48,183 nt of DNA from Macrostomum lignano (Eukaryota), in the NCBI GenBank assembly GCA_002269645.1, contig NIVC01004370.1, forward strand, positions 1 to 48,183. Direction: 5' to 3'. The notes beneath the pieces were generated by a model that was not told the DNA's origin, searched no databases, and saw nothing but the letters and a program-made list of their open reading frames with translations. The position numbers were made by a program, and so were the translations under genes. Each line of letters starts with the position of its first letter. Within the stretch, counting starts at the first letter, position 1. Shown here in pieces: positions 1,292-4,200 of this stretch.

Positions 1292-4200
1292 CTAGAGAAC
1301 GATATTTGGAAGATTAACAAATATGTGCAAAAGTAAATTGGGTCGGGAGGACCACATGGATCACCTATGCCTACGTCTCTGTCTCATAGCAGAAACCGCG
1401 CATGTTTGTTTCACCCAGTTTTGTCAAATTGTGTCCTTAAGCAAGACACTCAAATCTGCATTGCTTCAGTTCACCCAGCTGTAGAATGGGTGCCAGCGAC
1501 CCCCCAGTCCTTGGACTGAACAGCCGTACGCAGCCTTCAGATGCGCCGCGCAATAGCTGCGGCTGAGCTGTCGGTTGCACATCTTCCCAATAGGACAGGT
1601 GTAATCAATTATTATTATTATTATTAATGCAGCCATGGAAGCAAAAGCCAAGAGCCAGGGGAAGAAATGCTTGCAGCATCCTTGATGGATTCAACGTTTC
1701 CCAAAGACCATCACTAACTTCTCTCCAAGGGTTTGTCAAGCAGTTTAGGTTGGAAAAAAATGCAAAGACTCACCTCTGTTTGACCCGGTGTGATCCCTCA
1801 GCGCCAGGTGGTTGACAAAGTTGAAATGGGCGTGCTTCGGGTTCTGGGTGAGGTGCGGGTCGACATTGTCAGAGTGCGCATCCGATTGGTGCTCAGAGGT
1901 CCGGTTGGCTGCTGCTGCTGCTGCTGCTGGAGCTTCTGCTGAGCAGCCCGACTCTTGACGCTGTGAATGCCTCTGGCCGAGTGAGGGACAGCCGTCGAGG
2001 CGTCGAAGTCGCCGCTGTAGGCCGGTCGCCGCCGGCAAAAGTGCCGGTGTTGTCGACTCGCTGAGGCGACGCCTGCATCGCGCCAGAGTTCATTCGCTTT
2101 TATTTCGGTCAGGAGTTGGCCCCCCTAATTCGGACTAGAAATTCTTACTCTAAGCTTGAGACTGAAAAATGATCTGGACTTGTTTATACAAGCCCGCTTG
2201 GCCCAGCGGGTTGGGGCTGCGTGGCCTTCCTGTTAGCATACTGTTATTGCAAGTTCGTGGATAGGAGACACTGCGACAGGCTGGCTGAGACGGCGCACAA
2301 TGCCCAGGTTAAGATGGAAGTGTTGCTATTTTACTATTTTACATTTCGAACGCTGTGGAGACCGCCTATGGCTGGCCCGGTGCGCGGCTTTTGTGTTGTG
2401 ACCGTGCACAGCTGCTGGCTCGGCCTGCGGTACCCTTCTCTGAACTCGGTGAGATCTATTCGAACCTGCTCTGCCTTTTCTGAGTCTACTGTCAGCTGTT
2501 TCTTAGTCCGAATGCTCGACTCGCGCCTCAAGCTTTAAAACTTTCTTTTTACTAGTTTGTTGCAGAGTTGTATTTTGCTCTTTGTACAAGCATTGCAATG
2601 CATCTAAGAACTTCTCTAAGTTTTACTGTGCTTTTTTGGAGGCTAAATACGAACTCACCTCACTAAGTCCCCGGGACTCGATTCTGCGGGAGGCTTTGTC
2701 ATGCGATTCCCGTCCATCAGGGCCAGCAGCCCCCAAGGCACAGAAGTGCTTAAACTGCTTAAAGCTGAGAAAGGCAGGGCCGCTGTACACCCTGTGTGAG
2801 CGTGTACACGCCCAGGGGTCAGCGGAATGGGCCTGACTGCTTGACTCCTGTCTGGCTGCGGATCCCCTGCTGCCTTGATCTGCGGCAACAACCAGCAAAC
2901 CGGATAAAAGCTGACTAGCCGCAATCCGCCCTACTCACCACTCCGTGCTGGTAGGCGCTGTGGTGCCGGGTCCGGACCAGCCCCGTCTGCCGCGGCGCCA
3001 CCGGGTCGGGGCCGCCGAAACCACGCCGGTAGGCCGTTCCGACCGCTGACGCAGACCCGAGAATGTCGTAGTTGTCAAAAGACGAAGCCGCTGCAAAATG
3101 TCGACACAATTTGCCCATTAAATTGGGAAAGACTTTGAAGACTACGGCTAACTGGAGTTTTACAACAAATATGTTTACAACAAGAAGCCTGATTTTGCAG
3201 CCCAGCTTCGCATTTTTGAATAAAACAACCAAAGAGAATTGAAGAACCGCCTACTGAAGCTCGCCGGACTGAAGCTCGTCGGGTGGTCGGTGGACACCGG
3301 CAGCTCGTCATCCGAGGTCCGGCGGCGAGACGACGGCGTCGATGGTCGCGCCGATTCGCGCATCGACGACCCGCGTCGAGGCGGCACAGCGGGCGCGGCT
3401 CCTAGCAGCGGGATCGGGGAAGGCTGAGTGCGCCATCTCTGACTGCTAGCAGCGGGATCGGGGGAGGCTGAGTGCGCCATCTCTGACTGCTAGCAGCGGG
3501 ATCGGGGGAGGCTGAGTGCGCCATCTCTGACTGCTTGCAGCGGGATCGGGGGAGGCTGAGTGCGCCATCTCTGACTGCTAGCAGCGGGATCGGGGAAGGC
3601 TGAGTGCGCCATCTCTGACTGCTAGCAGCGGGATCGGGGGAGGCTGAGTGTGCCATCTCTGACTGCTAGCAGCGGGATTGGGGAGGCTGAGTGCGCCATC
3701 TCTGACTGCTAGCAGCGGGATTGGGGGAGGCTGAGTGCGCCATCTCTGACTGCTAGCAGCGGGATTGGGGGAGGCTGAGTGCGCCATCTCTGACTGCTAG
3801 CAGCGGGATTGGGGGAGGCTGAGTGCGCCATCTCTGACTGCTAGCAGCGGGATCGGGGGAGGCTGAGTGCGCCATCTCTGACTGGAGGGAAGGGAGAAGG
3901 GATGAAGGGAAGGGAGAAGGGATGAATGGAAGGGAGAAGGGATGAAGGGAAGGGAGAAGGGATGAAGGGAAGGGAGAAGGGATGAAGGGAAGGGAGAAGG
4001 GATGAAGGGAAGGGAGAAGGGATAAAGGGAAGGGAGAAGGGATGAAGGGAAGGGAGAAGGGATGAAGGGAAGGGAGAAGGGATGAAGGGAAGGGAGATTC
4101 GAATGGGAAGAGTAGGTGGAAGTGTCCCGGATTGTTGCGAGTAAGTCATAGTTCGGTGCATAATTCATAACTGAATCTAGGTCACAACATGGCAAAACAC

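Follow-up and report, generated by a model that had tools for sequence, protein, structure and literature searches.

A repeat family in Macrostomum lignano

We find that six sites within a window of Macrostomum lignano nuclear DNA (the whole stretch analysed, 48,183 nt and rich in minisatellites) share a homologous unit of approximately 200–250 nt. The sites are best read as ancient members of a single short interspersed repeat family, each of which has decayed on its own; the family is probably an unclassified non-autonomous mobile element for which SINE-like retroposition is the most plausible origin. The original prediction had described five of these sites (a–e) as an undescribed, probably mobile element of 55–95 nt with a conserved, strand-specific pseudoknot. 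The first part of that description is supported: the copies occur in both orientations, the downstream flanks tested share no significant similarity, detectable homology is confined to the unit, and searches of Rfam and the literature gave no match. The second part, a structured RNA fold, is not supported.

All five predicted sites are real, diverged homologues by both profile and single-sequence nhmmer searches (pairwise E-values for the latter, 1e-6 to 1e-10), and the orientations originally assigned to them are correct. A core 24-mer searched with up to 3 mismatches gave 2 matches against 0 expected. The sixth copy, f, is degenerate, and a covariance model (CM) search returned no copies beyond the known ones. 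Our comparisons cover six copies, all within one 48-kb window:

Copy a, 244–437, minus strand: long form (nhmmer; CM R1, 87.9 bits); profile match 282–432, originally predicted core 299–387, 5' inverted-repeat domain 355–433.
Copy b, 2695–2914, plus strand: short form (nhmmer pairwise extents; CM R1, 70.9 bits); profile match 2730–2850, predicted core 2776–2832, 5' domain 2730–2807.
Copy c, 7001–7203, minus strand: long form (nhmmer; CM R1, 85.3 bits); profile match 7057–7195, predicted core 7074–7152, 5' inverted-repeat domain 7121–7195.
Copy d, 11640–11878, plus strand: long form, block 2 being duplicated internally (sequence comparison, CM); profile match 11673–11819, predicted core 11711–11805, 5' domain 11672–11742.
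Copy e, 33487–33650, minus strand: short form, the most diverged among a–e (alignment, CM); profile match 33534–33640, predicted core 33552–33604, 5' domain 33574–33646.
Copy f, approximately 26263–26449, plus strand: degenerate (weak nhmmer match, sequence, alignment).

Copy f retains a well-preserved block 3 (GTGCTCAGGGCTCAGGGAATGGGT) alongside a decayed 5' half in which TGTACA has become TGTAGA, and it is not matched by the 5'-domain CM. Its alignment E-value of 4e-28 was obtained with a model that already contained f. A 32-bp minisatellite at 33726–34861 adjoins copy e.

Extent and conservation of the repeat unit

The homologous unit is considerably larger than the 55–95 nt first proposed. 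It starts about 45–50 nt upstream of the predicted start, at CCCCCAAGGCACAG, and runs about 90 nt past GGAATGGGC, beyond the predicted coordinates. The conserved ends and variable middle were described correctly, and the long (a, c, d) and short (b, e) forms differ by an indel of 25–45 nt. Two to three blocks are best kept, namely GCCGCTGTACACCCTGTGTGAGCG and GTGCTCAGGAGTCAGCGGAATGGGC and, more weakly, CCCCCAAGGCACAG. Mean pairwise identity among a–d is 72–81% in the core blocks versus approximately 63% in block 0, and the regions between blocks are barely alignable, which gives the family a mosaic pattern of conservation. The most likely reason for this pattern is that source (master) copies were constrained at the conserved blocks, while the remaining sequence would have drifted and taken indels. 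Selection acting on the copies after insertion might also produce such unevenness, and this counts against a mobile element. The downstream flanks that we tested show no significant similarity between copies; a longer b–e downstream homology suggested by Smith-Waterman alignment was unconfirmed by blastn or tblastx. Open antisense frames run through b and c, although indels put them out of register from one copy to the next, and translations of both strands of the element found no match in protein databases.

Comparison with SINEs

Retroposition machinery is active in the M. lignano genome, as shown by a young tRNA-Val SINE in the same window, which has an (ATT)n tail and a target-site duplication of 10 bp. 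Compared by description only, our family resembles the core-domain SINEs (CORE-, V-, Deu-, Ceph- and Meta-SINE) in being short and dispersed in both orientations, in having a strongly conserved inner block flanked by more variable regions, and in sharing its genome with an active LINE-dependent SINE. It differs from them in lacking a tRNA, 5S or 7SL-like head, A/B boxes and a defined tail, in having non-significant target-site duplications, and in bearing no significant similarity to the tRNA-Val SINE of the window. The copies show no defining feature of any transposable element class: a head, a consistent 3' tail and terminal inverted repeats are lacking, and target-site duplications are not significant overall. 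This counts against a mobile element.

Each of these features was examined in turn. Segments resembling tRNA-Val can be picked out by eye in a and b (GACTCAC, TCGATTCC), and a tRNA-derived head is unproven. Local alignment of the copies to the tRNA-Val of the window gives p = 0.03–0.18 per copy against shuffles, in an inconsistent register, and scans of the copies for A and B boxes are at background level. An A/T-rich patch is found about 50–70 nt past GGAATGGGC in c, d and e, with weak homology running beyond it, and there is no 3' tail that is consistent among copies. The CR1-like terminal octamer ATTCTRTG occurs once, in e only, and is not a feature of the family. LINE and SINE 3' ends can carry structured RNAs that reverse transcriptase recognises, such as the UnaL2 stem-loop and the R2 3' UTR, and these are conceptual analogues of the sense-strand fold originally predicted. 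The M. lignano family differs from these systems: the window holds no partner LINE, 3'-terminal hairpins followed by a T-rich run score no better than shuffled sequences (z −1.4 to +0.9), and the predicted fold lacks covariation.

Target-site duplications are at chance level in every copy but c, and are not significant overall. Copy c is flanked by a direct repeat lying near both limits of homology:

7204–7217, minus strand: candidate 5' target-site duplication of c, TACCTTCTTACCCA, matching its partner at 12/14 positions.
6987–7000, minus strand: candidate 3' target-site duplication of c, TACCTTCCTTCCCA, the partner of TACCTTCTTACCCA.

The match has p = 0.03 ungapped and p = 0.18 gapped, and is weak evidence because the sequence is pyrimidine-rich and of low complexity.

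An inverted repeat in the 5' half

The 5' half of the element forms an imperfect inverted repeat of 65–70 nt, with about 21–22 bp and a loop of 8–10 nt. Its arms are GGCACAG..AGTGTACA..CCTAAC and GTTAGG..TGTACAC..CCTGTGT, and it occupies bases that the original prediction had given to a pseudoknot stem and to the inner stem. The hairpin is significantly stable in three of the five copies a–e: for the U-to-M segment, z is −4.2 in a (0/200 shuffles), −3.4 in c (0/200) and −2.2 in e (3/200), with extended segments giving −2.7/−3.5 in a and −2.1/−2.9 in c, and the antisense hairpin of e giving −2.5. The folds of b, where the upstream GTGTACA arm is mutated, and of d are not significant against shuffles. 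The architecture is the same in all five minimum free energy (MFE) folds, and forms equally well on both strands. Pairing reaches 78.1% versus 75.3% in shuffles (16/500), and 4 cells are changed on both sides versus 1.7 expected (20/500), a modest level of covariation. Copy d alone has a CATACG insert in its 5' arm, the perfect complement of CGTATG in the 3' arm. The inverted repeat is the only structure in the element with some support.

Hairpins borne by transposable elements are known to give rise to new miRNA or siRNA loci, and the internal inverted repeat would be of interest in small-RNA data. The inverted repeat might itself be the functional unit, a TE-derived hairpin RNA acting as a miRNA- or siRNA-like precursor with the conserved block CUGUACACCCUGUGUGAGCG as one arm. 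The dimensions of the stem and loop and the stability seen in a, c and e are consistent with such a precursor, as are the greater conservation of the 3' arm (81% versus 63% for the 5' arm) and a few compensatory changes, such as the one from A-U to G-C at columns 22/84 in c. We nonetheless consider a precursor role unlikely, given the two copies with non-significant folds, the absence of a match to Rfam miRNA models, and the extension of homology, including a second conserved block, to about 150 nt past the hairpin. The compensations may also be mutational, the CATACG insert of d looking as if it had been copied from the opposite arm by template switching.

Possible DNA-level explanations

The element shares with MITEs and foldback elements its small size, its non-coding and dispersed nature, and a long inverted repeat. 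It differs in that its inverted repeat is internal and confined to the 5' half, with homology continuing on both sides, and in ending without terminal inverted repeats or target-site duplications. The proposal that it is a MITE fails because terminal inverted repeats and short target-site duplications of fixed length are both absent; the best inverted or direct flank matches are 7–8 nt, which is the chance level. The window contains neither a parent element nor a transposase.

More broadly, the family could be what is left of a DNA transposon or a foldback element, or it could be an exapted protein-binding module, with the repeated TGTACA/GTAC palindromes and the conserved blocks as putative binding sites. 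Motif content is what suggests this: each ancestral copy has three GTAC-containing motifs where GTAC is rare in the window (0.002 per nt), c appears by eye to have regained GTAC at a non-homologous position, and conserved blocks alternate with variable spacers. The equivalence of the two strands for the inverted repeat also speaks for action on DNA. The recurrence of GTAC, however, has p of only about 0.07–0.1 per event and was noticed post hoc, and the structural objections raised against MITEs (no terminal inverted repeats or fixed-length duplications, an internal inverted repeat, no transposase or parent in the window) apply here as well. Action at the DNA level is an unlikely account of the family, for which we prefer retroposition of a SINE-like element.

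The predicted pseudoknot

The original prediction was of a sense-strand RNA containing an H-type pseudoknot, with CCGCUG/CAGCGG crossing GCUCA/UGGGC, together with an inner GUAC stem, the RNA being taken to belong to a structured retroelement or to be a new class of self-cleaving ribozyme. All three complementarities that were described do occur, with 5–6/6 and 5/5 pairs in a–d, and one pair (columns 34/55) does run through C-G, U.G and U-A among the copies. Stem A also lies within the nested MFE fold of b and c, and candidate helices number 9 on the proposed strand versus 3 on the other. As a selected fold, though, the pairings amount to no more than chance and shared ancestry would give, and we regard the pseudoknot as very unlikely.

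Covariation is no higher than column composition gives. Across stems A and C, 89.2% of cells are paired versus 88.4% in column shuffles (237/500 as high), 0 pairs are changed on both sides, and the covariation score of 0.170 versus 0.162 is reached by 218/500 shuffles, in a test on six sequences whose power is very low. On either strand, RNAalifold gives an unfavourable covariation term. All informative changes are single transitions. Five of the six stem substitutions among a–d keep pairing. Under neutral transition bias we estimate p of about 0.05 for this, uncorrected for the post hoc choice of stems, and e and f contribute about 8 pairing breaks. The wobbles were proposed to be strand-specific and are in fact divided between strands, while stem C (the 3' stem) of copy e pairs on the antisense strand only.

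Alternative pairings are also plentiful. Equally good 5-bp helices make up 9 of the 1176 possible in the core, and a local hairpin built from the same bases as the pseudoknot scores equally well. For stem A and the GUAC stem, both this local hairpin and the long inverted repeat, which has better support, are competing structures. Read by eye, the sequences place the partner of the inner GTAC stem at one homologous position in a, b, d and e and at a different one in c. The z-scores of MFE for the five predicted cores are non-significant on the sense strand (+0.62, −1.24, +1.46, −0.75, +1.49) and on the antisense strand (−0.55, −2.57, −0.06, +0.62, −0.05), the pseudoknot itself being outside what ViennaRNA can score. 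A 2-nt AA linker across a 6-bp stem also looks sterically tight. We conclude that the pairings are complementary stretches passed on by descent within a G+T-rich sequence, where many mutually exclusive pairings are available, and that the fold is not demonstrated.

Ribozymes are carried by other flatworm and metazoan repeats, including the hammerhead of Schistosoma Sm-alpha and HDV-like and twister examples. The M. lignano element is comparable as a small motif in a flatworm repeat for which a pseudoknot topology was proposed. It differs from them in having no match to an Rfam ribozyme family at E<=10. At gathering thresholds, self-cleaving ribozymes (hammerhead, HDV-like, twister, twister-sister, pistol and hatchet) are unmatched across the whole window. 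At E<=10, positions 1–12000 and 26000–34000, which include all six copies, yield no ribozyme, tRNA, 5S, 7SL or miRNA match at the copies, nor does any other Rfam family match the element. Hammerhead core motifs are not visible by eye, and the helix order of the HDV-like fold differs from the proposed order of A, hairpin, C, A', C'. Covariation, fold stability and the Rfam searches all leave the conserved strand-specific or ribozyme-like fold unsupported. We attach very little probability to a mobile structured RNA whose source transcript would depend on the long 5' hairpin as well as on tertiary pairing, on the sense strand, between CCGCUG and the CAGCGG loop of the GCUCA/UGGGC stem; such a fold would act as a new structure for recognition by reverse transcriptase or as a new self-cleaving motif in flatworm retroposons. 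Only genome-wide covariation in favour of the strand-specific fold would make the element a candidate for a new kind of structured or catalytic RNA.

Relation to annotated repeats

A literature search with core 13–15-mers gave one irrelevant match, and the element was not found described. Nine matches from a metagenome pattern scan resemble the pattern alone, and are attributed to chance because nothing beyond the search pattern matches. [quoted passage not shown] If it is merely an unclassified repeat, its value is modest: it would extend the M. lignano repeat library by one short family, and would help in masking a repeat-heavy model genome.

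Copies and extent of the dispersed element

A dispersed element is present in the window. Five homologous sites (copies a to e) had been claimed, and a profile built from them recovers all five. Pairwise E-values between copies range from 1e-6 to 1e-10 in independent single-sequence nhmmer searches, and a 24-nt core pattern gives two near-exact matches against none expected. A weak extra profile match, followed by sequence and alignment, adds a sixth, decayed copy (f).

Copies of the dispersed element
282-432, minus strand: copy a, profile match
2730-2850, plus strand: copy b, profile match
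7057-7195, minus strand: copy c, profile match
11673-11819, plus strand: copy d, profile match
33534-33640, minus strand: copy e, profile match
~26263-26449, plus strand: copy f, decayed, weak extra profile match

The element, seemingly undescribed before, is longer than the 55-95 nt originally assigned to it, which span only the best-conserved part of a supported unit of ~200-250 nt. Homology begins ~45-50 nt upstream of the former start, at CCCCCAAGGCACAG (~35 nt further upstream in b and d), and runs ~90 nt beyond GGAATGGGC. Long (a, c, d) and short (b, e) forms differ by an indel of 25-45 nt in the GT-rich middle section, and block 2 is partly duplicated in copy d. Conservation is mosaic: mean pairwise identity among a-d is 81% in block GCCGCTGTACACCCTGTGTGAGCG, 72% in block 3 (GTGCTCAGGAGTCAGCGGAATGGGC) and 63% in block 0, and the segments separating these blocks are barely alignable. 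The conserved blocks probably reflect constraint acting in source copies. A covariance-model search with the 5′ domain found no additional copies, and a metagenome pattern scan and protein-database searches yielded none from beyond the window. The downstream flanks tested share no significant similarity between different copies, so the copies are not segmental duplicates.

The proposed pseudoknot

The original prediction gave the element a conserved, strand-specific pseudoknot, in which stem A (CCGCUG/CAGCGG) crosses stem C (GCUCA/UGGGC) and an inner GTAC/GTAC stem surrounds a variable insert. This structure fails each test applied, with the low power that six sequences allow. The complementary segments are present: all 6 pairs of stem A form in copies b-d, with 5/6 in a, 4/6 in e and 5/6 in f (where the remaining position lies opposite a gap), and stem C is complete (5/5) in every copy except e (2/5). 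Since the copies share ancestry, recurring pairing is not independent evidence and substitutions alone count. We assessed covariation with the six cores aligned in the correct register, using as a control 500 shuffles of the 3′ letters within columns. Stems A and C are paired in 89.2% of cells versus 88.4% in shuffles (237/500 as high), their covariation score is 0.170 versus 0.162 (218/500), and in none of their pairs do both sides depart from the commonest pair. The C-G, U.G, U-A series comprises two single transitions, the majority state at that position being already U.G, from which any transition gives a Watson-Crick pair. Among a-d, five of six substitutions in the two stems keep pairing by our own estimate (p ~0.05 at a 2:1 transition bias, likewise estimated and uncorrected for post-hoc stem choice), and copies e and f contribute ~8 further breaks.

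The wobbles are not strand-specific. Those in c, d and f are compatible with the sense strand, on which the pairings had been read, but copy e and one of the two changes in copy a favor the antisense strand (~6 events versus ~4); stem C of copy e (ACCCA/UAGAC) pairs on the antisense strand only, via three G.U pairs. The sense strand is G+T-rich, so more G.U options are available there. The GTAC partner of the inner stem occupies equivalent sites in four copies (a, b, d and e), but lies at a different position in c. GTAC is self-complementary and has a third copy upstream. Its scarcity in the window (0.002 per nt) makes its reappearance in c mildly interesting (p ~0.07).

Other helices perform as well. 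Of the 1176 helices of 5 bp that the 60-column core can form, nine on the sense strand and three on the antisense strand show at least 85% pairing, the sense set including some that exclude the proposed stems. RNAalifold selects a local hairpin between blocks 1 and 2 (CGCU-G-UACAC/GUGUGAGCG), which occupies bases assigned to stem A and to the inner stem; combined with stem C, it equals or slightly beats the pseudoknot model (89.2% versus 86.3% in shuffles; 37/500). Consensus energies are weak (-8.7 kcal/mol sense, -4.9 kcal/mol antisense), with an unfavorable covariation term. Sense-strand minimum free energy z-scores for the originally proposed intervals a-e are +0.62, -1.24, +1.46, -0.75 and +1.49; antisense values are no better except for b (-2.57).

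An internal inverted repeat

The feature deserving follow-up is a 65-70 nt internal inverted repeat in the 5′ part of the element, which is better supported than the pseudoknot; its support is modest and falls short of proof. TGTACAC(T) in block 1 is an inverted repeat of an upstream motif, AGTGTACA. Between the two lies a short stem of variable sequence: CCTAAC/GTTAGG in copy a, CTGCTT/AGGCAG in copy b, and a GAC/GUC-based stem in copies c and e. When the U-to-M segment of this domain is folded separately for each copy, all five minimum free energy folds have the same architecture, with z-scores of -4.16 (a), -3.44 (c), -2.19 (e), -0.87 (d) and +0.74 (b); for a and c, 0/200 shuffles are as stable. 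Pairing of block 0 with block 2 (GCACAG/CUGUGU) extends the helix outward to ~21-22 bp over 65-70 nt. Antisense stability of the extended hairpin equals or exceeds that of the sense strand (sense versus antisense: a, -25.8 versus -26.7; c, -24.1 versus -31.9; e, -18.0 versus -28.7 kcal/mol).

Across five copies, pair counts are 78.1% versus 75.3% (16/500), four cells are changed on both sides versus 1.7 expected (20/500), and the covariation score is 0.133 versus 0.088 (18/500), numbers that by the tool's caveat are possible in 5-25% of unconstrained related sequences. One compensatory example is in copy c, where GCACAG becomes GCGCAG and CUGUGU becomes CUGCGU. Copy d has an insert of its own in the 5′ arm (11684-11690, plus strand), containing CATACG, that perfectly complements CGTATG in the 3′ arm (11735-11741, plus strand); it resembles the product of a template switch, which would have lengthened the inverted repeat. 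According to a published model, template-switch mutations can both generate and "repair" palindromic DNA in the absence of selection on RNA. The hairpin takes up the CCGCUG and GUAC bases, and the two models are incompatible in one conformation.

Class of the element

No copy matches an Rfam family at gathering thresholds or at E<=10, which excludes recognizable tRNA, 5S or 7SL heads, snRNAs, known miRNAs and all curated self-cleaving ribozymes. A tRNA-Val-like head upstream of a-d was rejected as unproven, the fragments being insignificant and inconsistent in register. A/B-box matches at the copies are at background level, neither the candidate 3′ hairpins nor the T-rich runs exceed shuffled controls, and CR1-type terminal octamers are absent apart from one CR1-like match in e. 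Flank comparison gave direct or inverted matches of 7-8 nt only. The one longer direct repeat, matching at 12/14 positions, flanks copy c (TACCTTCTTACCCA at 7217-7204, TACCTTCCTTCCCA at 7000-6987); it is pyrimidine-rich and near the limits of detectable homology of that copy (p 0.03 ungapped, 0.18 gapped).

Most probably, the element is an old non-autonomous mobile element, as yet unclassified, with six copies in one 48-kb window, and we infer a retroposon as the preferred type. LINE-driven retroposition works in this genome, as indicated by a young, textbook tRNA-Val(CAC)-derived SINE in the window (32024-32362, minus strand), unrelated in sequence to copies a-f. Its tRNA-like head (32254-32328; ARAGORN/Rfam), upstream of which part of the 5′ half of the tRNA is duplicated, is followed by a body of ~225 nt; the SINE ends in an (ATT)9 tail and is flanked by a perfect 10-bp target-site duplication, ATGAGACTGA (32363-32372 and 32014-32023). 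A second copy of its body (1425-1626, plus strand; 83% identity over 224 nt) is 5′-truncated, without the tRNA head, and internally deleted, and ends in an (ATT)n tail.

Genomic setting

Macrostomum lignano is a free-living flatworm. An ORF of intronless appearance with a DUF1751/TMEM115 domain matches two UniRef TMEM115 entries from M. lignano at 100% identity across 225 aa, which identifies the window as nuclear DNA from this species.

Genes and exons in the window
38706-39383, minus strand: TMEM115 gene, 100% identity to M. lignano UniRef entries
40914-41150 and 43875-44219, plus strand: two GLDC (glycine dehydrogenase)-like exons, introns filled with minisatellites, named by eye only
8763-9191, minus strand: PTEN/tensin-like exon with the motif PSQKRYVNYF, named by eye only

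Base composition and skew vary greatly from one part of the window to another, and ~25 minisatellite or microsatellite arrays occupy much of its length. This is consistent with the published M. lignano genome, in which repeats account for over half of the sequence and simple and tandem repeats for 15% (PMC5730564). Minisatellite density is exceptional between 3402 and 47234, where the ~25 arrays have 12-56-bp units and reach 2.4 kb; one of them, at 20814-23191, has 60 repeats of a 40-mer. Two arrays, (GACA)n at 9249-9748 and (TCTG)n at 46496-47234, are reverse complements with 94% identity. Adjoining copy e, the edge (33656-33753, plus strand) of a 32-bp minisatellite (33726-34861) gives sub-threshold Rfam miRNA-precursor matches (26 bits versus gathering scores of 75-100); the array units there appear inverted by eye and could form a hairpin.
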